Part shown: piece after piece, positions 43,962 to 61,300 of the stretch
Position numbering within the stretch: position 1 is the stretch's first letter
Layout: every line of letters begins with the position of its first letter
Assembly (NCBI GenBank): GCA_950097015.1
Contig: CATNEN010000002.1
Span: 2,232,001-2,296,000, forward strand
Length of the DNA stretch: 64,000 bases
Source: Macrostomum hystrix
Taxonomy: Eukaryota > Animalia > Platyhelminthes
Direction of reading: 5' to 3'
Translations under genes and position numbers: made by a program
Notes under the pieces: model-generated
What the model was told of the DNA's origin: nothing
Databases searched by the model: none
Seen by the model: only the letters and a program-made list of their open reading frames with translations

Positions 43962-46900
43962 TCATGCAGTTGCATCGGCCCCTTCAACGGCTTCTAGAGA
44001 CGCTGGAATAGCAACAGCAGCGGCAGCAGCAGCTTCAGAAACAATCTGATTAAGAGCTTCAGCAGCAGCAGCAGCAGCAGAGTCCATCTCACTTTCACCA
44101 GTTACCACGGTCGTGTCAGAGGTCAGTTCGCCAGTCTCCTGCTTGACCTCGGCTGGCTGCAAGTCGATGGTGTGATAGCGATTGTACGGATGGTACGGTA
44201 CCAGCTCTGAGTTGGAGTTGACCTGAGCACAGCTGGTGCTCAAACCCGGCCTGTTTGTGTCCGGCAGGTGGCCGAGCAGCCAGGCCTGGCAGGCCGACTC
44301 CGAGTCTGGCGAGAGGCGGTTGGCCGGCCGTTGCAGCCAGTGAGCCAGGCGGCTTCGCTTGGCCATTGTGACAGGCCGGTGGGTGGCCTTGGCCCTGGCT
44401 AGCTGGCCTGCCCGGTAGAAGACGCTCTCGCAGCCGGTGGCGTACATCAGCAGGCAGGAGCCCTCGCTGACGCCGCGAATCTCCATCTGGTCCCAGCACG
44501 TGACACCGCGGAACAGCTCGTCTGGGCGGGCCTGCGGATTGAAAGATGAGAGAATTCGATTGGAACCAGATGTACTAAGCAAGGACCCGGAAACCTCGTG
44601 GAATGGGAGATTGAAATTGCAACTGCCAAAGGCTGTGTACAGCCGCTCAGTCCATAGACACTCTCATCTCTACATGCTCAACTCTGGATGTTAATAATAA
44701 TAATAATTGCAGGAGGGTTGCGGGCAATGGCACGTCATTTCGGTGACACTAGACCCGCAGCCAGGGAGGAGGCAGTTCCGCCCATTTCGCTGACTCCTGA
44801 GCACACACGCACACAGATACTGTACGCAGGCACACGCTCACACAGGTGTGTACATCTGCCCTGACTTCCTCATTGTCAGGCAGTGTACACTCTCACTGTG
44901 CCTTGGAAGTTGGCCCTCAAGAACGTAAATTGCACGACATGCTCCCCAAGCCTTCTCTCTGCGGCTGCGCCCCAAATAAATGTGGCCTTGCCGTGGAATC
45001 GAGCTCAGGGACCTTGGTGCGAGAGGCAAACACATTAACCACCGACCCCCTGTGGATGGCATCTAAAACCTGAATTATCTCAAGTGTTCACCTGGAAGCC
45101 AAAGGTGGCCCTGAGCAGACTCAGCGTGTCTCGCTGCCACTGGGCGCCTAGACAAGCCGAACTGGTCTTCTTGGCGTCCGGGGCATCCACAGACGCCGCC
45201 GGAGGTTCGACAGCTTCGACGGAATCAGCCGATGCGTCATCGTCGTCGCTACGTCGCATTGTGGCTAGGCGAATCCACTGCAGAGCGTTGCGCACCAGGA
45301 ACACCTGCCGAATGTCCGCGGACTGCGGTGGCTGCTGCGGCCGCTCCGACCCGCCTCTGGAAAAAAGGAAGGTGACAGCATAAAATCAAAATGATGGTCA
45401 TGGACCACCAGTCTGAATCTCATGGACCACCAGTCTGAATCTCATGGACCACCAGTCTGAATCTCAAGGACCACCTGTCTGAATCTCATGGACCACCTGT
45501 CTGAACCTTGAGGACCACCTGACTGAATCTTAAGGATCACCTATCCGAACTTCAAGTACCACCTGTCTGAACTTCAAGGACCACCTGTCTGAACTTCAAG
45601 TACCACCTGTCTGAACTTCAAGTACCACCTGTCTGAACTTCAAGTACCACCTGTCTGAACTTCAAGTACCACCTGTCTGAACTTCAAGGACCACCTGTCT
45701 GAACTTCAAGTACCACCTGTCTGAACTTCAAGGACCACCTGTCTGAACTTCAAGGACCACCTATCTGAACTTCAAGGACCACCTGTCTGAACTTCAAGGA
45801 CCACCTGACTGAATCTTAAGGACCACCTGTCTGAACCTCAAGGAGACTTTCTGATACTTAGAACTTGAAGAAAATCAGACCAGTACAAACAGACGGAGAT
45901 TTAGAATCAGGATTCCGCACCTGTACTGCAGCAGGTACTCGGACCAGCTCTTTGCTCCGTCGCGGTTTCGGCTGCTGCCGGCTGCGCCAAGGGGGACAGC
46001 GGGAACCGCGGACTCCGGCTTGGGCCGCTCAACAGATGCCGCAGTTGCCACTTCGACTTTAGCAGGAATCAAATCGACTTGATCGGCCAACTTCGGCGAT
46101 GGCGACAAAGGCTGGGAAGGCGTCCACTGAGAAGGCGGTGGCGGCGGCGGTGGGGGTAGAGGAGGCGGCGGCTGAGACTGCTGCGGAGGAGGCCTTTCCA
46201 CCAGTTGCACGGTCAGCAAGCGGGTTTCAGGATCGATGGAAACAAGAAACAGGTTGTCCGACACCTGACGCTCCGCCGCGCGCCTGAGAATTCAATTATT
46301 CCGAGACATTATTGGGCAATTGAGCAGGATATCCATGGTGGAAACAAGTTTATCAGTGTGGGGAATTGTGTGGGGAATGATGTGGAGAATGGTGTGTGGA
46401 ATGGTGTGGGAAATAGTGTGGAGAATGGTGTGGAGAATGGTGTGTGGAATGGTGTGGGGAATGGTGTGGGAAATTGTGTGTGGAATGGTGTGGGGAATGG
46501 TGTGTCGAATGGTGTGGGGAATGGTGTGGGAAATTGTGTGTGGAATGGTGTGGGGAATGGTGTGGGGAATTGTGTGTGGAATGGTGTGGGGAATGGTGTG
46601 TGGAATGGTGTGGGGAATGGTGTGGGGAATGGTGTGGGAAATTGTGTGTGGAATGGTGTGGGGAATGGTGTGGGGAATGGTGTGTGGAATGGTGTGGGGA
46701 ATGGTGTGGGAAATTGTGTGTGGAATGGTGTGGGGAATGGTGTGGGGAATGGTGTGTGGAATGGTGTGGGGAATGGTGTGTGGAATGGTGTGGGGAATGG
46801 TGTGGGGAATTGAGTGGGGAATGGTGTGGGGAATTGTGTGGGGAATGGTGTGGGGAATTGTGTGGGGAATGGTGTGGGGAATAGTGTGTGGAATGGTGTG

Positions 46901-49900
46901 GGGAATGGTGTGGGGAATTCAGTAGGGGTTTGTGTAAAGAATGGTGTGAGGAATTGTGTTGGGAAATGTGTGGGGAATGGTGTGGTGAATGGTGTAGGAA
47001 ATGCTGTAGGGAATGCTGTAGGGAATGCTGCAGGGAATGCTGTAGGGAACGGTAAGGTATCAGAGCCAAGTGACAAAGGTGGCTGCTCACTTATAATCTT
47101 CCTGGGCGCTGGCGGATGCCGCCGAGCCTCCGGCGGCCCTGAAGGCATTCCACAGACGCAGCAGCCGCTTGGCGGTCTCGTCAGTGGCGATGATGTGCAG
47201 TTGGCGCACAGCCAGAGCTACCAGCTTGTCCAGGGTGAAAAGCTCGTAGTGTTGAACGCCAAGGAGCTCGCGAACCTGACGGTCGGATTGAGGTTCGAAG
47301 GATTAAGACATCCACAAAAATCAATTAGAGCCAAATTTGTAAACGCATTCTGGAGATTTCAGCCCAGACCAAGAGGTCGGGAGTTCGAACCTCCCCGGAG
47401 TAGAGACTGAACAGCCGTACGCAGACTTTGCGAGTGGATGCGGCTGAGGCATTGGCCTATCTGAGCTAGCTGGAATTTCTATTTCTCTTCGCATTGCGCT
47501 CACCTGGTCCTCAAAAGCGGCTGAGTCCACAGCGCCATCCATCAGGGACACCAGCAGGTCCATGAAGTGCGAATACATCCGGTCCGGCCGTACAGTCGGC
47601 GGCTGGCGCAGGCGCAGAGCCACCGCAGTGCTCTCAGAGCCGGTGCCGTCGAAATCGCCAGCAGCCGCTGCGGCCTCATCGCAGGCGGTTTTGGCAGCGG
47701 CCAGCCGCTTACACAGAAGGTGATACAGCCGCAGCAGGGCATAGATGCTGGTATTGCCTAGCAGCAGAGATGACGCAGTTGCTGCAGCAGCAGCGGTGGC
47801 GTTGGCGACGGAGGCGCCGTCTTTGACTTCGTCTTCGCCGTCGCTGCCTTCATCGTCGCTCAACGGCAGCCGTGTCTCCAGCAGGAGGTCCCGAAGCCAT
47901 CGACGCAGCAGGCGTTTAACAGCGGACTTCTCCTCCTTAGCGTAGCCCTGCCGTTTCACGTGGTGGATAAGAAGGCCGACAGCGTCTCGACGCACGTCAT
48001 CGTCGGAGGGCATCTGGAGCCGGAGTGGAGCCGCTGCGGAGCCCCGAACGGACAACTCGTTGACGAGGGCTCTAGTGCGCAGCTGTTTCTGATCAGCCTG
48101 CTTGAAGTTGGCACTTTGGTGGTCCAGGCTCTTCAGATAGCACCGATCGGTCTGTTCGCGCCAGACTCTGTTGAAAGACTTCTGAGCATCGCGCCATTCC
48201 TCTTGTTTGGCGCGCAGGCGGCGAAGTGCCAGGGGCGCAGCTACCGCCGGACTGTCCTGCAGGCCCTGAATCATGGCCTGGGCGCGTTCGCCATAGATTC
48301 TGCAAGTTGGGAGACCGGATACAGATTTTATTTAGTCCCATTTATTACATGTGTCAAAGCAAAACCTCAGAGGCATGCAATTTGATAACCTGGGTTTCAT
48401 TTGGTGTATTAATTGCGACCGGATCTAACTTTAACCAGCTGGGAATAGCCAATTATCAAACACTGAACATGCTGAACATAAGTGAGCACAGCTTAATCAG
48501 TAAAGTTGGTGAAAAATTGGCGGCCCATTTTACAAGAGCCATAGAGATAAGGCGGAGGCAGTTTTTTAGCTTCCTATTATTAGAGAATGAGCAGGACTGC
48601 AGTTGGCAAGGCACATCCAAAAAGCGAACGCCAAATGCGGGGGGGACAAAGGAATTCAGCTGAGAAATGCTGCGGTGGGCCGGCATGGCCACTGCAACGG
48701 CTCGCTTATCCCCATGAGCCGCGACTTTCGATTAAAGGGGCTGCTGCTGCGACACAGTTTGAAGCTGGCACCAGTACGCAATCGAGATGCGGATGTAGAA
48801 AAGTGGGACTAGAGTGGAGTGACAAAATGCAAACTGCAATTTACCCGGCGCATAGAGACCGGAGAGCTAGGGGAGCGAAACAGGCAGGCCAAGCACGATT
48901 AGCTGGCCATCGATACCGCAGAACTCGCGCCTTGAGGCTCAGCAATGCCATGCCCCTAAACTGGTGGATTAAGCTGTGGCTATGGATGGGAGGGGAAGGA
49001 ACACAGGCGGTCACTGAGCCCCAAGCTGTGAGATATGAAAGGCATGGATCGGAGGAAGCAGGCGGCAGAAGCAATCTGGGATCTGGCGCTCATAATGTAT
49101 GCAGGGCGCTGCTAGGAGGCGACTGAGATGGCCGCGGCCAAACGCGCCGGATGAATTAAGGCCAGGGTGCAGAGTGACAGCCAGGCGGGGGGCGTAGGAG
49201 GCCAGATGTTGCTAGCCGAGCCTCAAGTGCCTACGCCTGGTGCTTTCAGAGCTACCAAGGAGAAGGGGGCGAGCGGCGATAGCGGGGCACAGCGGCAAGG
49301 ATTCAGACGCAGCGTATCAGCTTGGGGGTTGGTAGGCGGTAGTCGGGGACTGAGCCGCGAGGAAAATGAGTGCTCTACGGCTGCGTCCTGTTGTAGCCCA
49401 TGCCTATCTGCACGATGCTGACCAATCTGACCAATTGGAATTTGGCCGCTCCTTGGCAGGCAGCCATGCAACAGGGCAGAACTCAGCAATAGCAGGGGAT
49501 GACACAATGTGCCGTATAAACCGGACTGCAGCTAAAATATATGGTCTCATTCTTTAAGTTTATAATTGTGCTTTGATCTTAGCTCTTGGTGAGTAGTTTA
49601 TTTCTTACAGAAATAAAATATGCGAATATATTAAAAATTAATATATCTATCAATTAGTTGCTACGAGCATGGAAGAGGATCAACACTTCCGGCCCTTCAC
49701 CAAGCATTCTGTAGAGCGCATAGTCCGCAGGCAGGAGGAAGGCACTTTCTTGGGCCAGGCGTTGAGTGCGCACGCATCCGCGTTCGGAGCTGCGCACACG
49801 CACGCAAATGTGGCGACGCCGCTAGCCGGACGGGTGTGCAAGTACGGCCTGAATGAGATCGGAGAAGCCGAAGAGGCTAAGCACAGTCCGACTAAGCCGA

Positions 49901-52900
49901 CAACTACAACTTCGGAAGAGCGAAAACCGAACCCAAAGCTAGCGGCTGGAATGAAGCTGCCACCGGCACTGAGCGATAAATTTCACGCGAAAAGACTTGG
50001 TGGCGTTCTTCTGGAAGACATCGACGATTACTATGGCGATAAATTCACTTTCGTAGTGATATCGCGCGACAAAACTATCTTTAGATTTTCAGCCACAAAC
50101 GCGCTGTTTGTATTGTCGCCATTTAATCCAGTACGAAGGGCCGCGATTCGTGTTTTGACACACCCCGCGTTCTCCATGATGGTTCTGCTAGCTATTATCT
50201 GCAACTGCGTCTTCATGGCACGTAATAGCAGCTCGGAGGCTGTTGAGTACACCTTTACAGCTATTTACACGGCTGAAGCCACTATCAAAGCGATCTCACG
50301 CGGGCTCATACTCACGGACTTCACCTATCTGCGAGACGCTTGGAACTGGTTAGACTTCATAGTGATCGGACTTGCTTACATCATGTTCTTTGTGCCCACA
50401 CTGGGAAATCTCAGTGCGCTGCGGTCTCTTCGTGTGTTGCGCGCGCTTAAGACGGTGACCACTGTACCAGGCTTAAAGACCATCGTTGGAGCGCTTATGG
50501 AAGCCGTCAAGAGGCTCAGAGATGTCGGAATTTTGACAATCTTTGTCCTTAGCATCTTTGCTCTGGTCGGCTTGCAGGTTTACAAGGGAACACTCCTTCA
50601 AAAGTGTGTCAAACGGTTTAACTTCACTAGTTACCTCGACTACGAGTACGTAGGAAACAGCACAGATCTTACGAAGTCTCAATTAGATGACTTGGAGCAT
50701 CTACTCGAAAAAGTCTATTATAACAATATGAGCAACTGGCTGGGCTACCCAAACGAATTGAGAGTTTGCTCTTTAAATCCAGACATGGGCCAGCAGTGCC
50801 CAGAAGGTTACAAATGTTTTCGAACGGATAAAGTGAATCCCAACTTTGGCTATACAAACTTTGACAACTTCGGCTGGTCAATGCTTTGCGCTTTCCGCTT
50901 AATGACACAGGACGCCTGGGAGAGTCTCTACCAGTTAATCCTTCGAACTAATGGCACACCCCACGTCGTGTTTTTTGTACTAGTCATAATGATGGGATCT
51001 TTCTTCCTAATTAATGTCATCCTTGCCATAGTGGCAATGGCTTACGATGAGGTGAGAAAGCAAGACAAGCTTGACGAGGAGGAGGAAGAGGCAGCGAGAA
51101 AGCAGGAGGATGAGAGGCGAGAGCTGGAAGAACATGTGAAGGAAGTTTCGGTGGAGAAAAGCGTTTCGGATGAAGTCAGCTGTTTAAGTATTACAGACAT
51201 TTACAAAGCGGCAGGGATACCCTTGGAGAGTGCAAAAAAGAGCTTAGACAAGTTGAGCGTACGCTCCGATAAGATCGAAGGTGGTCCAGTGCGAACCCCA
51301 ATAAGCTCCTACATTTCTAAGCACCTATTGAAACAAAAGTCTAAAAGTGTGAGCCTACCCGGATCGCCATGCATAAAGCACAAAGACCGATTCCACTGGA
51401 AGCCCAGCGAATGTACGCAGGTAAACGTGCTCGAGACGATAAGTTTCCCATACGCAGATGATTCAGCCGCTCATACACCTGCTTCGGAAGTCAGCTCGAG
51501 GGAGCCAAAGGATGGACCAAACAGCAAGTTCAAGTACTTCGCACTGTTTTCCGCTTTTGCTAACAGGCAGCCAACAAAGACGGATCTACTAGGAAAGATT
51601 GCAAACAGCAAGTCGCCACTGGAATCTCGCAAATATAAGGACATACTCATGTGTACCAGAAACGGGTCGGACAAGCCGATCCCAGAGATCTTGCTCCAAG
51701 AGGAGACGAAACAGCCCGGAGTTATCGATCACAAGGAGCTGCTTGGCATCAGAAAGACTCAAAGTCAGCGTACGCTGCGTGAAACGACATCGCAGTCACA
51801 AGTAGGAGGCGAAATTGAAATGCATGATGTAATTGTGCTTAAAACCCTGATTGAGGATGCGACAAAGCCAGAGAAAGATGAAGTGGAATGTAGGCCAAAA
51901 GAGAAGAAGTTTGAGCACTACAAGCACTTGTTCTTAGAGAAAGCCTGCTACAGCTGGGAGTGCTGCTACTGTTGGAAGGTGTTTGAAAAGTATGTCGGCT
52001 TCTTCATACTTGACCCATTTGTGGAGCTCTTCATAACGCTGTGCATTCTAGTCAACACTGGCTGCATGGCCCTAGATGTTCCGTCTAACACTCCGACTTT
52101 TAAAGAAGTTTTGAGCAATGCTAATCTATTCTTTACAGCTACTTTTGGTGTAGAGGCAGTGTGCAAGCTGATCGCAATGAAACCGCAAGTTTACTTCAAA
52201 GATGGCTGGAATATATTCGACTTCACGATTGTAGTTTTGAGCTTTGTCGAATTACCACTGTCTAACGTTCAAGGCCTTTCCATACTTCGCGCCTTTCGAC
52301 TTCTCAGAGTATTTAAACTCGCTAAGTCATGGCAGACGATGAACCTTCTATTTGCTATCATTGCAAGAACAATGGGTGCCCTTGGAAACTTAGTGTTCGT
52401 ACTCGGGATTATTATATTTATCTTCGCAGTGGTGGGAATGCAGCTGTTTGGCGAGAACTATGCTCTGTATAAGAACGAAACATTGTACCCGGAGTTCAAA
52501 GGCGACTATCCCAGGTGGAATTTCAAAGACTTTACGCACAGCTTTATGATTGTTTTCCGCGTGCTATGTGGCGAATGGATCGAGAGCATGTGGGGCTGTA
52601 TGAACGTAAACGGCTACATCTGCGTACCATTCTTTTTGCTGACCAACATTCTGGCTAGCCTGGTGGTGCTCAGCTTATTCCTGGCGCTGCTGCTGAGCAG
52701 CTTCGGTGCTGAAAGCTTGCAACGTCGCGAAGAAGAAGAAGAGGTGAACAAATTGCAAGAGGCTATAGACAGAATTAATAGGTTCATAGTTTGGTCCAGA
52801 ATTAATATTAAGAGACTATTCTGGCACTTAGTGGACAGAGCCTGCACTCGCAACTACAACGACAACGATCTATTCGAAAGTGATGACGCTGACGACAGCA

Positions 52901-55900
52901 GCGAAGACAAAGCGAAGCCATGCGGAGGGAAGGGCAGGCCAGGCATCCAGTTGGACAGCAGATTTCCACTAAAGCAACACGGAGCTTATATCATGGAGAA
53001 CGTGACTATTGCCGCCAGCCAAATGGTGTTTAAGGACATAAACGAGGCCAACATTCTCGCGGATACTAGCAGCGGCACACATCAAAACAAAGTCTTCCCC
53101 GCGGGCCACATGACCATTGCGATCGAAGACAAGTTGTCACCGAAATTCGATGAAGAGCCTGAGATCAACGAAGTGGACATTCAGTACTGGGATGCGCCGG
53201 AGGACTGCCTGCCAAAGCGGCTCATGGATTTCTGCCCTAGGGCTGTGCAGCTGTGCGACAATACCAATCTGGGAAAGATCTGGTGGGGATTTCGCTGCCG
53301 CGCATATAAGCTGGTTGAGCACAAGTACTTTGAAATGTTTATTATCCTGATGATAGCGTTGAGCAGCGTCACCCTAACACTGGAGGATGTAAATCTACCA
53401 AAGCGACCGAAACTGAAGCTAGTCCTAGAATACATGGACAAGTGTTTCACAATTATATTCACTTTCGAAATGATCGTCAAATGGTTCGCTTTTGGTTTGA
53501 AAAAGTATTTTAAGGACGCCTGGTGCTGGCTGGATTTTGTTATAGTTAACGTGGCATTATTTAGTCTAGTCCTTAACTTTTTAGGCGGCGCATCAGGTCA
53601 AAACATGGGCGCATTCAAGGCAATGCGAACGCTAAGAGCACTAAGGCCGCTTCGAGCAGTAAGTCGCTGGGAAGGCATGAAGGTTGTGGTCAACGCGTTG
53701 ATTCAGGCGATACCATCCATCTTTAATGTACTGCTTGTGTGCCTCGTGTTCTGGTTGATATTTAGCATTATGGGAGTGCAGCTGTTTGGAGGACAATTCT
53801 ACAAGTGCATCGACAGCAACAATGAGAGAGTTTCAGCAGATATAATAGCAAACAAAGAGGAGTGCGAGCAGATGGCCGCCGCGTTTAGGAACGTGACCTG
53901 GGAAAATTCGAGGATCAACTTTGACAATTTCCTAAACGGATATCTGGCACTGTTTCAAATCGCTACGTACAAGGGTTGGATTTCGATAATTGCTGACGCC
54001 GTGGACATAACAGGTATGAGGAAAAAAGTTTTGTATACAATGTGCGGTATTACAAAATTTATCGAAATTTACACCAAAATAATAATTGCAGGTGTAAACA
54101 ATCAACCAAGGAGGGATGCCAGTACGTCAATGTACCTATTCTTTGTCCTATTTATAATATTTGGCTCATTCTTCACACTGAAGCTGTTTATCGGTGTGAT
54201 AATCGACAACTTCAACGTGCAGAAGAAGCGAGCAGGCGGTTCCGTGGAGCTATTCATGACTGAGGACCAGAAACGCTACTACAAGGCCATGAAGAAAATG
54301 AGCAGCGCAGCGCCGCAAAAGCCCATCCCGAAGCCGAAGTTGAGAATCTCGCAGTTTTTCTTTAAGGTGATCAATGACCAAAAGTTTGACATAGCAATCA
54401 TGGTGTTCATTATGCTCAATACTATAGTTATGTGTATTGAGCATCACAATCAGTCGGAAACATTCAATGATGTAGTCGAGCAGATCAATCGCTTCTTCAT
54501 CGTGATCTTCACTGGAGAGTGCGTGATGAAACTGCTGGCACAACGCTGGTACTACTTTAAGTTCGCTTGGAATATGTTCGACTTTGTCATCGTAGTACTA
54601 AGCATTCTCACGTGGGCCATCGAAGATATCATGGTGCGTCTGCCGATACCGCCAACAATGATTCGCGTGGTGCGAGTGTTCCGGGTTGGCCGAGTTCTTC
54701 GCCTAGTGAAATCGGCTCGCGGAATTCGAACCCTACTGTTCTCACTGTTCGTATCTCTGCCGGCACTGTTCAACATTGGCCTGCTACTGTTCATGATCAT
54801 GTTTATCTATAGCATTGTCGGCATATCGTTCTTCAGTCACGTGCGATACCGCAGCGGCATCGACGAGATCTTCAACTTCGAGACCTTCCCAGCAGGCATG
54901 GTGGTGCTGTTCCAGCTGAGCACGTCAGCAGGCTGGGACGGCGTGCTGGACGGCCTCATCAATGAAGAGGAGCCCTTCTGCAGTCCGAATAAAAAGCCAC
55001 ACAGCGACTGCGGCAACTACGCAGTAGCGGTGGTGTTTCTCATCTCTTACCTGGTCATCAGCTTCCTAGTCATTATCAACATGTACATCGCCGTGATTCT
55101 AGAAAATTTCAGCCAAGCCACGGAGGACGTCCAGCAAGGGCTGACGCAAGAGGACTTCGATCTATTCTACGAGAAATGGGAGGCCTACGATCCGAAAGCG
55201 AAAGGTTTCATTCCTGTTGAGCAGGTGTACGCATTCCTGGACGAATTAGATCCGCCTTTGCAGCTGCCGCAGCCGAACAAGATCAAACTGGCCACACTGA
55301 GTGTGCCAATCTGCAAGGGGGACACAATCTTCTGCGTCGACCTGTTGGACGCTTTGACGCGCAATTTTCTAGGCACGGCGGCAGACGAAGAGGAGCTGGC
55401 CGCCTTGAAGCCCAAAGGTGGCGGCAAGCTCAAGGATGAGCGCATCATCATCAGCAACACCATGGAGCGGCAGAGGCAGCGATATGCAGCTTGCATCATC
55501 ACCAAGTACGTTCGCGCCTACGCTTCCAGGTGCAAAGCCAAGAGACTGGAAGCTGGCGGCGACAACGTCATCAAGGTGACTGGAGGACATGACGACTGAC
55601 AAAAATACAACGAGCGACTGGCTTAGAAACTATTAGTTTTGACTAATTTGTAACTTTGAAACTATGAGTCTACTAAAGTAAAGAATTGATTTACCCCGAG
55701 AATAGTGAGGCGAGGGTCCAATAGTTTCCTTCAGTATTACCCGTTCGATTCACACTTACTAAATGTAACCTTCAGTAACTCTAATGCTTAACGCTGATGA
55801 AAAGTTATTTTTACACTCACGCGTATATCATTTATACCGCAATAAAAATATCAATATTGACTTTTTTGCAGCTTTTGACTGTATAAAGACGGATTTAATC

Positions 55901-58330
55901 CTAATTTAATCCTAAACTTGAGCTATTTACACGCCTGTATGTAAATGATTGTAACCACTTGTTAAAGCTATATCAATCCCAATCGCTAATCGCATATCCG
56001 CAATCAGCAGCTAGCAAATAATTGTTATCAAATGCTTCGTTAGCATGGAGTTCTATGATGTTATGCCTATTGATGTTATCCCTATCGCAAAGGAATGCCT
56101 GCTATTGCCAACAAATAATTGAGCAAGCTTCTGATCTATACTCCAATGCTAACAATTAAGTAAAATGAACTCTAATGCTTTGCAAAGAAACCACTTTTAA
56201 TCAGACCAATCGGTTGACTTGGATATATACTTTTGTCAGCTATTTATATAACTATCTATGCAGACTGAAAAATTAATTGCAGAATTAGAAAACCAACTCA
56301 ACCACCATGCTTATCAGGAAACAGCACAAGGTCCGGAAGTAAAATATGCTCGTAGTTTTTTTTCATAAAAATAGTGCGAGAAACGCGAAGTTACATTTTT
56401 AGTACAGTCATTAAACTATAGTATTGTAATTATCTTGACTTGTACTAAAAATATAAGACGAGAAAAATGATTTTTTTGTTATAATTGCTAGAGCGAACCA
56501 ATTTTTGTGTTCGCTCTGATGCAATTATTGCCGTCGGCTTGGCTTGTAGGCGGTTGGAATTTTAAATTCAACGCCAGATCTCATTGCCCTTATAACCATT
56601 TTTTTCTCTGACAGACATCATTCAGTCAGAAATCATTCATTCTTCTAGAAAGAATGTAATGCATTCGAATATGCGTTTGAGAGGCAAAGCAGAATGGCAG
56701 ATTAATGGAATGAGTCAGAATGAGATATTGGAATTATTGTCACTCTGTAATAGAACAAAATTCCCCGCAAATGAAAAGAAAAAGATTTATTTCATGCGAT
56801 TATTATTATGAGCTTTCCGCCCGTAAACTCGACCTCTTGCTTAGGAGTATTTTACAGTAGAAGAGAAAGAGTGTTTACAACAAGCGCAGACTTCTCACCT
56901 CTGAATGGCCTTCCTGAGTAGTACACCAGAGCTGCAGCCAAGATCATCTCCGAGCCTATAGCTGGCCTGCTCCTCTTGAGTTGGCAGCCGGTGGAGCCGT
57001 TTCAGCAAAGCCTCCAGAGCCCTGATAGCCGAGCAGTTCACCTCCAGCACCATGTCCAACTCGTATCGTTCGTCCTCCACTCGATAGCAGGCCTCTTCAA
57101 ATTGGTTCTTGCGCGCGCTGACATTGTGAGTGTCCTCGCTGGACCAGCTGGGGAAGCTCACTAGACTGTCGTTAAGCACCTGTTGAGGATAATTGTGGCG
57201 TAGGGAAATATTCGGGGGTGAGCGGTTTAACGCGTTTGGCAATTGCCCCAAGCTCGAGCTCGATTCCACGGCGAGGCCACATTCATTTGGGGCGCAGCCG
57301 CGGAGAGAAGGCTTGGGGGCTTGTCGTGGTGCAATTTACGCAATTGAGGGCCAACCTCCATGCAATTCACAGTGAGAGTGAACACTGATGATAAGAAAGC
57401 GTGTGAGCGTGTGCCTGTGTACAGTATCTGTGTGCGTGTGTGCTCAGGAGTCAGCGAAATGGGCAGAATTGCTTCCTAGCAGGCTGAGGGTCTAGTGTCA
57501 CTAAATGATGTGCCACTGTCGGCAGCCATTCTGCAAGGATTACTATTCTGATATTCAAACGAAATTCAGCTAAAGCTACTTAAAGTAGTTAAACTCGAAA
57601 AGCATTCAATGTTATAGTACGACTAATCGCAATAGAAAAGAAATCAAGCAGTAATCCAACTGAGCTAGGCCAGGTGGTACAGCCCAGCTAGTTTGTGTCG
57701 ATTTTTACAGCTGATTAAAGTAAAACAAATATTGTTTTCCTATGGCTGGGATTCGAACTCCAGACCTCTTACCGGCACACATACATAATCCCAAACCTTA
57801 CCTCCTGGTACAGGGGCAGCTTCTCTCGACCGCTGCACCTGGGCGAAGCGTGGCTGGGCGGCAGCATGCGGTACGAGCTGCCGCAGCGAGTTAGCGTATT
57901 GAAGTCGATGTCCATGTGATGCCTGCCCGGCTCGCGATCCACTTCGGCGGCCGCCGCCGCGACTGTGGAGGAACCGGCAGACGATGACAATGCTCCAGCA
58001 TCGTCAACAACTGCGACAGCGGGGGCGGAGCTAGTCCCTCCGACGGCTGTTGTTGAACCCGAAGAAGGAGTCAAGAATGACAGGCCGACAGAGTTGGCCT
58101 CGGAGTTCAATGCCTCCTTCAAGTCCCAGTACACCTGTGGCTGGGAGCGCAGGGGACCCACCGCACGGGCCAGCAGCTCGGCCTTGTCAATGCGGCCATT
58201 GTTGAACAGATTCACGCAGCGCAAGAAGCCGCCGAACACGTCGGCATCGGGCATCGCCGATTGCAGACCCTCGAATAGTGTCGGCCGGGACTTCAGCGAG
58301 TCCTGGCTGGCGCCGATTGAGCGTCGAACG

Positions 58331-58362
<32 letters not shown>

Positions 58363-61300
58363 AACAATGCGGGCCTTCTTTGCCGATGTGGGCGCAGATG
58401 CTGTCGTTGACAATGGAGGATCAACGGTGTAAGCGGGTTCAGTGGCCGCGGCTGGTGTCAGAGAAGTCGGCCTGGCCCGCTTCAAACCACCACCGCCTCC
58501 TCCGCTGCCAGCCGAAGCGGACGATGAGGACGACGTGGAGGCCGCAGCGGCGGAGGCGGCAGCAGCCGCAGCTACAACGGCGCCAACTTGATGCGAGCCA
58601 ACGCTGCCGCCGCTTTGTGGCGAGTTGCTTGCGGCGTTGCCTGGTAGAATCAGTTTGGGATTGCGCATATGTGGACTTAACTTAATTGTGATTGAAAACA
58701 ATCATTAATAATTACTCGACTAGCTAAAGCACTATAAAGTACGAGAGGCGAACAACTTAGAATTAGAATTTCACCATTTAGGGATAAATTAACAAAGAGA
58801 GGGTACAATCGAACATGGGGGGATAATGAGGATGGGGAATAATTAAACATGACGATCTGACACTGAGGCGGAAACGTTTCCTGAAATTTGATATTTAGGG
58901 GATAATATTACGTGGGATCAGATACGGAGGGGATAAAATAAACAGGGATCTGATATTGAGAGGATAATACAATCCAAGTATCGAATATTAGGGGAAAATA
59001 AAACGTGGGATCTGTTATTAAGGGGATAATATAAATAATCTGGGATTTGATATTGAGGGGATAATTAAACATGCCGATCTAGTATATCGAGTATAAAATA
59101 ACAAAAATTATCTTACTTTGATGGGATAATCATATCACAAACCAGCTAGACAATAGACTCACCGTGATCCCTGAGCTGCTGACTGACTGGGGTCATAGCG
59201 GACTGCGGCAGGAATTGTGAGAACTCCTCCAGCAGGTCAGGCTGGCCAGCAAACAGGCGCTCTACCTCGCCCAGCACCTGCTCCTCATTGTTATGAGACT
59301 CTCCGGCCCGCTGCTCCTTCTGGTATTTGTGTAGAATGTCCAGGAACTGTTTGTAAACTGGCGACCTGCCAGCGAATCTGGACTTGATTTTATTCACGTA
59401 GGAGATGGCGTGGTTGAACTCTTCGTATTGGTCGCCTGGCCCAGCGCTGCCGCCGCTGCTCGAGACGGAGGCTGAAGACTGCGGAGCAATGCTGGGTCCC
59501 GGGTGATGCGAGTGAGCGGGACCAGTGGGCCCCACCAGAGTGACTGGCGGCCTGTTTGGTTGCAGCAGCGAGATGGTCTGCTTGTCCGAGCTAGCCTTCA
59601 TCTTGTAGCCGCTAGGCAGGAAGGTGTTGAAGCCAAGGATAAGGTCATAGTGGCCTTGAAAAAAGTTCTTCACGCGATTGATCACTTCCTGGAAAGTCAG
59701 GTGTGTTGATTGGCGGGGTTAGTAAATAGACATTGCACCTAGCCAAGCTATTGTGCTGCGTAAACATTTCTGCTGAAGGATAACAATTCATTGCCCTCGG
59801 AAAGGGAGGTGAGTGGTTCAATGCGTTTGGCGATTGCGCCAGGGTCCCTGAGCTCGAATCCACGGCTAGGCCACTTTTATTTGGGGCGCAGCCGCGAAGA
59901 GATAGCTTGGGGGGCTTGTCGTGCAATTTATGCCCTTGAGGGCCAACCTCCAGGGCACAGTGAGTGTACACTGCCTGCATGTACACACCTGTGTGAGCGT
60001 GTGCCTGCGTACGGTATTTATGTGTGTGTGCTCGGGAGTCAGCGAAATGGGCAGAATTGCCTCCTCGCAGGCTGCGGGTCTAGTGTCACTAAATGATGTG
60101 CCATTGCCCGCAGCCCTCCTGCAATTATTGTTCCCCTCGGTCTCGTTTACGAAAAAAAACCTAAGCTCACCTGAGTATCAATCGAAGCAGCTTTGAAATC
60201 ACGCATAGTATCCAAAAAGCTGTTGTATACAGCCGGGTGATCGCTGAATCGCAGCTTCACCTGATCTAGGTAGGACAGGGCGTCTTCAACTTTTAAACTT
60301 TGCGAGGCCGCTGCTGTGGCCTCAGCGGCGGCGGCGGCTGCTGCTGCTGCTGACGAGTTTCCACCGAGCTGCATTAGAGAAATAGAAATAAAACAAATAC
60401 AAGGGATAAGAAAATGCTTATAAAAATATCTCAAGACACAAACTACACTACTGACAGTAGAAATACTATAAAATCGAGGCTATTATAAAAAAGATCAATA
60501 CAAACCTGGACCTGCGAAGACGCTGCAGTTACAATAGTTCCAACTGTGGCTGCGGCAACAGAGCTCGATGAGTTTATTGGAGCCGGAGCCAGAAGTGGCT
60601 TCTGCTGCTGAACCGGCGGCGGAGGAGGCGGCGGAGGTGGAGGTGGAGGAGCCGGCTGCGCCTGAGGCGGCTGGGTGAGGGTGGGGGCGAGAAGGCTAGC
60701 CGGCTGATGCAGGAACACATGATGCTGCTGCTGCTGCTGCTGTTGGTGATGATGATGAGCAGCAGGGTGATGCTCAACTGGCTGGCCAAATGGGGCCAAC
60801 TGGACAATGGCAGAGCCAGGCGGTTGGTGATGATGGTGATGATGAGAGCCAACAACGGCTGCAGCAGCGGCGGCAACATTTGAAGGATGCTGCAGCTGCG
60901 ATGTGGACGAAGCAGCTGGAATAGCCAGCGTTGGAGCCTGAGGAAGCGGCGCAGACGTTGGCTGCTGCTGCTGGGCCTGAGAAATGGCCGCGGCCTGTTG
61001 GAAAGCGCTAGCCGGATAGACGGCGAATGACCCGGCAGATGGTCGGGTACCCACGGCTGCGGCGGCAGCTAGCGCGGCTGCGTGCAGCATGGAGGTGGCT
61101 GCCTGGGGTGCCGCAGGCGTGATGGCATGCGGCTGATGCTGCTGGCTGCTGGCATGGTGATGATGCACACCAGGAGCTATAGCGGTGGCAACAACACTAG
61201 TGGCAATGAGTGACGATGCAGGTGTCGGCGTGGGTGTTGCAACGCCAGCTTGAGAAACCTGCGCCAGAAGGGCAGCTGGAGCAGCAATAGGAGCCGAACC

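Follow-up and report, generated by a model that had tools for sequence, protein, structure and literature searches.

The 64,000-nucleotide stretch of the Macrostomum hystrix genome analysed here (GenBank assembly GCA_950097015.1, contig CATNEN010000002.1, positions 2,232,001 to 2,296,000; hereafter the window, whose numbering is used throughout) carries on its forward strand, at 49669-55599, an intact Nav1-type voltage-gated sodium channel gene with a DEKA selectivity filter. In the first domain out of four (DI~DIV), the position of the aromatic residue that normally stacks on tetrodotoxin (TTX) and saxitoxin (STX) is occupied by Ala. Taking the whole account together, we consider it reasonably probable that this gene is one of three macrostomid paralogues, that the Ala arose on the stem of its own lineage, that the encoded channel would be TTX-resistant, and that divergence between the paralogues is a likelier cause than selection by toxins.

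Identity and structure of the channel gene

The gene comprises one long open reading frame (ORF) of 1976 codons plus the stop, which runs without interruption in the ORF list of the window. Comparison with Pfam revealed four Ion_trans domains (E 1.4e-237), in addition to weaker matches to Na_trans_assoc, which falls under its curated cut-off, and GPHH. Among solved structures, the top matches are human Nav1.2, Nav1.7 and Nav1.4, all over the full length and at ~1490 bits, with calcium channels far behind. The nearest protein is a sodium channel of Macrostomum lignano, and the identity to the orthologue in that species is 89-92%. The inactivation-gate triad in the DIII-DIV linker reads Leu-Phe-Met (LFM), a variant of the IFM/MFM motif.

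A 78-nucleotide segment at 54014-54091 is probably the sole intron of the coding region; once it is removed, the mature protein would have about 1950 residues. The M. lignano orthologue is devoid of exactly the 26 residues that this segment encodes, and the two paralogues of the same genome described below, which lie on contigs C7 and C39, have their reading frames broken at the same place. All the residues of DI to DIII discussed here lie upstream of the intron, and their numbering is therefore unchanged by it. Searches were run with the uninterrupted frame, in which the in-frame intron is read through, or with exon 1 alone. The coding regions of all three paralogues are nearly intronless and share one intron position after the DIII pore, with a length of 78 nucleotides in the window copy, roughly 50-60 in C7 and ~1.6 kb in C39, the last of which has at least one further frame break near its C-terminus. 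The loci of more distant four-domain channels in the same genome match in exon-sized pieces of ~100-200 residues. Since the near-intronless layout and the intron position are common to the three paralogues, the layout should be old.

Pore residues of the window channel

Translation of the frame, together with an alignment to human Nav1.2 for the DI filter and toxin-contact positions and a comparison of the paralogues for the gate, gave the following features, all on the forward strand:

50911-50913 (+): Asp415, filter residue of DI (within the translated segment 50896-50937)
50914-50916 (+): Ala416, codon GCC, at the aromatic TTX/STX contact position of DI (Y401 of rat Nav1.4)
50920-50922 (+): Glu418, outer-ring residue of DI, conserved
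52573-52575 to 52582-52584 (+): filter Glu969 to outer-ring Glu972 of DII, EWIE, canonical
53971-53973 (+): Lys1435, filter residue of DIII
53980-53982 and 53983-53985 (+): Ile1438 and Ser1439 of DIII, equivalent to M1240/D1241 of rat Nav1.4
54014-54091 (+): predicted intron, 78 nucleotides, GT...AG, AT-rich, in frame and stop-free
54250-54258 (+): position of the LFM inactivation gate, equivalent to IFM/MFM
54928-54930 to 54937-54939 (+): filter Ala to outer-ring Asp of DIV, AGWD, canonical

The HMMER alignment to human Nav1.2 places Ala416 opposite the Phe of FRLMTQDFWENLYQL. The residue that follows the filter Asp of DI is thus non-aromatic, as in the TTX/STX-resistant Nav isoforms, and with Ser1439 the outer-ring charge of DIII is absent from the window channel. 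An earlier note on this DNA had reported the DEKA filter, TQDAWE in DI and TYKGWIS in DIII; direct translation recovered all three, with the coordinates and residue numbers that it gave.

Three paralogues and the origin of the alanine

Six-frame search of the same genome revealed two further Nav1 genes, ~70% identical to the window copy, on the contigs C7 and C39. The motifs of the three copies are as follows:

C2 (window copy): DI TQDAWE; DIII KGWIS; DIV AGWDG; gate LFM
C7: DI TQDCWE; DIII KGWLG; DIV AGWDS; gate IFL
C39: DI TQDYWE; DIII KGWTA; DIV AGWDG; gate MFM

Their M. lignano orthologues have, at the DI position and the DIII pair, A/IP, Y/LG and Y/TL, respectively. In both species C39 combines the Tyr of DI with canonical DII and DIV sites. 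The outer-ring acid of DIII is missing from all six Macrostomum sequences (S/P, G/G and A/L for the three orthologue pairs). The C7 gate reads IFL, instead of IFM or MFM, in both species as well.

We built a maximum-likelihood tree of 18 sequences over 1520 columns, in which the three paralogues were represented by their exon-1 open frames; it was built without an outgroup from Nav2 or Cav. The window channel groups with the Nav1 channels of M. lignano and Bdelloura inside the lophotrochozoan Nav1 clade. Support is 100/100 for every orthologue pair, 99/99 for the grouping of C2 with C7 and 100/100 for the clade of three paralogues; the Bdelloura channel, with Phe in DI and Thr-Asp in DIII, is sister to the Macrostomum clade at 100/100. 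This topology indicates that both duplications are specific to the macrostomids and older than the split between M. hystrix and M. lignano.

Parsimony on the same tree yields three losses of the aromatic residue, two of them in Macrostomum. As reconstructed, the Ala of DI is a derived state with a single origin on the C2 stem, before the M. lignano split, and the Tyr of C39 reads as the retained ancestral state. The Cys of C7 appears as a recent change in M. hystrix, for the M. lignano orthologue has Tyr, and its codon TGT is one step from a Tyr codon. The terminal branches of the window copy and its orthologue are the shortest (0.044 and 0.034, compared to 0.054-0.068 in the others), which suggests that the window copy is under purifying selection.

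Outside the genus, a closely related flatworm channel is that of the triclad Bdelloura candida, BdNa1 (Jeziorski et al. 1997). Despite being a flatworm Nav1 and sister to the Macrostomum paralogues, it differs in having Phe in DI, an outer-ring Asp in DIII, Gly at the filter position of DIV (DEKG) and His in the DIV ring. His also replaces the outer-ring Asp of DIV in Hapalochlaena lunulata (AGWHS, compared to GGWHS in Bdelloura). Bdelloura lives as a commensal on horseshoe crabs.

How unusual the two states are

Among the 120 best full-length relatives, 116 have Tyr or Phe at the DI contact position, and the four exceptions are two entries of the M. lignano orthologue and two isoforms of Haliotis rubra. 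The DI fragments that contain the motif are aromatic in 95 of 102 cases; the rest are mostly of the vertebrate Nav1.5/1.8 type, in addition to one Nav paralogue of the leech Hirudo verbana with Cys. In other flatworms the residue is Phe in Bdelloura and Tyr in a monogenean fragment, and M. lignano keeps Tyr in two of its three paralogues. The earlier note had allowed for the residues being ancestral across the phylum regardless of toxin exposure, which fails for DI given these Phe- and Tyr-bearing sequences. From the sequences compared, the Ala of DI appears rare, derived and specific to one paralogue, and does not look like a chance-level state. With only the DI fragment as query, a search returned no fragments from other Macrostomum species and, from other flatworms, one motif-bearing monogenean and one motif-less cestode; a search seeded with the Bdelloura channel found no additional full-length flatworm Nav1.

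At the DIII pair, the position after the Trp (+1) is Ile in most invertebrates, and the outer-ring position (+2) is highly variable among them (D, E, Q, V, G, P, L, I). At this pair insects have Ile-Gln, compared to Ile-Ser in the window channel, and insect channels are blocked by nanomolar TTX. As far as the alignments tell, Ser at +2 is unremarkable, and the DIII state is common to the whole family and labile, with Ser in the window channel and Pro in its M. lignano orthologue.

Among the exceptions at DI, the Ala of Haliotis rubra is found beside a Tyr in H. cracherodii, a difference that could be a toxin-resistance polymorphism among abalones.

Predicted toxin sensitivity

In tested vertebrate channels, every non-aromatic replacement examined at the DI position lowers the affinity for TTX by hundreds to thousands of fold: >600-fold resistance for Y401A (PMC8476164, Table 3), ~2,500-fold for Y401C/N and ~7,000-fold for Y401S (PMC8476164). 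In six nemertean species, as in the newt retina, the Tyr-to-Ala change at this position has been interpreted as conferring resistance (PMC12732450). On the strength of this mutagenesis, above all of Y401A, the window copy is probably TTX-insensitive; we predict that it conducts sodium normally and is sensitive to TTX and STX in the micromolar rather than the nanomolar range. The claim of the earlier note that the residue lost in DI is one whose replacement confers resistance is borne out, since the same change makes vertebrate channels more than 600-fold resistant to TTX (PMC8476164, PMC12732450).

The DIII pair contributes less to this prediction than the earlier note had supposed. As it had stated, the replacement of Met-Asp by Thr-Ile in human Nav1.7 lowers the affinity for STX; the reduction is ~250-fold (PMC7481244). 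The human and primate Nav1.7 resembles the window channel in the loss of the outer-ring Asp of DIII. Its Thr-Ile is a resistance-type pair (PMC7481244), whereas the window pair is Ile-Ser and is shared in kind by all Macrostomum paralogues. Changes of Met to Ile, Val or Leu at DIII +1 are treated as neutral (PMC12732450), and Thr at the M1240 position is associated with about 10-15-fold resistance (PMC8476164, PMC5660226). In the part of PMC5660226 that summarises Terlau et al., neutral substitution of the DIII ring charge makes STX binding modestly lower. Counting two independent changes of the resistance type in this one copy is not supported, for the Ile is treated as neutral (PMC12732450) and the non-acidic DIII ring belongs to the whole family.

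Why the residue changed

In our reading, the three Nav1 paralogues arose by two duplications within the macrostomids, and Ala took the place of the aromatic DI residue on the stem of the window paralogue. The rest of the toxin site is canonical (DEKA, with the outer-ring Glu of DI and DII and the Asp of DIV), save for the family-wide uncharged DIII ring. By inference from the vertebrate mutants, the window copy should have an affinity for TTX and STX hundreds of times lower than that of the paralogue with Tyr. The outcome would be a split into TTX-sensitive-type and TTX-resistant-type isoforms, convergent with that of vertebrate Nav1.5, Nav1.8 and Nav1.9, and its cause divergence of the paralogues, or a relaxation of constraint once they had been duplicated, which seems likelier than selection by guanidinium toxins. 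Such a split by divergence is the more economical reading, since vertebrate Nav1.5, Nav1.8 and Nav1.9 as well as the leech paralogue have lost the aromatic residue with no link to a toxin shown here.

Two groups of known channels help to weigh this proposal. The vertebrate Nav1.5 (Cys) and Nav1.8/Nav1.9 (Ser) are likewise DEKA Nav1 channels in which one duplicate lost the DI aromatic and its sisters keep it, and their sensitive/resistant split occurs in animals that are not known to carry toxin; the Macrostomum duplications differ in being independent and macrostomid-specific, and in having Ala as the replacement. By contrast, newt Nav1.1/1.3/1.6, pufferfish Nav1.1La/1.6b and the channels of six nemertean species share the very same Tyr-to-Ala change at the same position (PMC12732450, PMC8476164), but there the toxin is present and resistance extends over the paralogues, whereas in Macrostomum no toxin is known and one copy keeps Tyr.

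Selection by guanidinium toxins, the view of the earlier note, would instead make the Ala of DI, along with the uncharged DIII ring, adaptive; the toxins could be borne by the worm itself or come from its food or the sediment in which it lives. We regard this as unlikely. Such selection would account for an Ala that lies two nucleotide substitutions away from the codons of Tyr and Phe and is kept in two species, and for the second independent loss, from Tyr to Cys, in the C7 copy of M. hystrix; moreover, replacement by Ala in DI has been interpreted as an adaptation in nemerteans, newts and pufferfish (PMC12732450, PMC8476164). Flatworm TTX, however, has been reported from polyclads and from Bipalium, a land planarian, only (PMC9412668), and a full-text literature search returned no record of TTX in Macrostomum, although a missing report does not equal a missing toxin. 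The worms are cultured on diatoms, and the DIII state differs even between the two species. In toxin-bearing pufferfish and newts resistance is spread across the paralogues (PMC8476164), and the retention of a Tyr copy is not what one would expect if toxins were selecting on the animal; in Macrostomum, resistance changes do not extend to all the paralogues, for C39 retains Tyr and its canonical DII and DIV sites, though with Thr-Ala in DIII. The inference of toxin adaptation is thus unsupported. A wider version, in which the near-intronless trio repeatedly lost the DI aromatic through exposure of brackish-sediment meiofauna to bacterial, cyanobacterial or dinoflagellate guanidinium toxins, we hold to be rather unlikely too.

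The window channel might also still be toxin-sensitive despite its Ala, with other contacts of the invertebrate pore compensating. Identical substitutions do give unequal resistance in different backgrounds (PMC12732450), and the other filter and outer-ring acidic residues of DI, DII and DIV are intact. We nevertheless judge this quite improbable, because the non-aromatic replacements tested so far have all been costly (PMC8476164) and the window channel also has no negative charge in DIII. Finally, the nearly intronless coding region inside an intron of another gene, Sin3, on the opposite strand, could suggest a decaying, processed, retrocopy-like duplicate in which Ala is a neutral defect. 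The frame, open over its 1976 codons, the presence of all four domains, the DEKA filter and the gate triad, the 89-92% identity to the M. lignano orthologue with the shortest branches in the family, and the layout and intron position that three paralogues share and that must hence be old, make this extremely improbable. A pseudogene or an assembly artefact was ruled out because the frame is open and M. lignano has kept the Ala as well.

Several points weigh against divergence after duplication and the pharmacology that goes with it. Flatworm sampling is thin, comprising Macrostomum, Bdelloura and one monogenean fragment. Two aromatic losses fall within one small clade, and the Thr at the M1240 position of C39, a residue linked to about 10-15-fold resistance, means that every copy carries some resistance-type residue, which toxin selection could fit. 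The predicted pharmacology is inferred from other channels rather than from Macrostomum recordings, and the effects of P-loop substitutions depend on the channel background (PMC12732450).

Significance

Most invertebrates have been described with a single Nav1 gene, and flatworms are said to be without Nav2 (PMC6259924). Here a flatworm lineage has three, with the chief TTX determinant varying among them (Ala; Cys or Tyr; Tyr), seemingly an independent replay of the vertebrate sensitive/resistant isoform split. Our literature search found no paper in which pore residues of sodium channels from Macrostomum are discussed. Both the mechanism and the kind of inference are conventional, and the added interest lies in a lineage-specific, near-intronless three-gene family with a split of sensitive and resistant type. 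With this family one can test directly if toxin pressure is required for such splits. The worms are laboratory-cultured, and transgenesis exists for M. lignano (PMC5730564). In planarian and Macrostomum physiology, TTX may not silence all sodium currents. If toxin exposure were true after all, this lab-culturable, transgenic-ready genus would offer a model of how target-site resistance evolves stepwise in a young set of paralogues. In M. lignano, one sodium-channel transcript has been reported in the gonads and probably in stem cells (PMC3447372), a hint that some copy has a non-neuronal role.

Genomic setting and a fourth channel

The exons of a Sin3 co-repressor gene lie around the channel gene on the opposite strand:

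47321-48274 (-): Sin3 exon with the Sin3a_C domain (domain match; host gene)
56895-57269 (-): Sin3 exon with the Sin3_corepress domain (domain match; host gene)
57769-58701 (-): Sin3 co-repressor exon, flanking the channel gene
59146-59685 (-): Sin3 exon with PAH repeats (domain match; host gene)

Since the exons at 47321-48274 and 56895-57269 bracket the channel on the opposite strand, the channel gene is nested within a Sin3 intron. At 46205-47148, just upstream of the C-terminal Sin3 exon, sits an imperfect tandem repeat of ~900 bp with several frames open (repeats of the GNGVGN, PFPT and HHSP types).

The same genome has a fourth, divergent four-domain channel on contig C3 (6945398-6949528), which is ~28-36% identical to the window protein. 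It also has a DEKA filter, with LCQDWWD in DI, where Trp follows the Asp, CGEWIEN in DII, FKGWID in DIII and SAGFND in DIV, and its DIII-DIV linker has no IFM-like triad.

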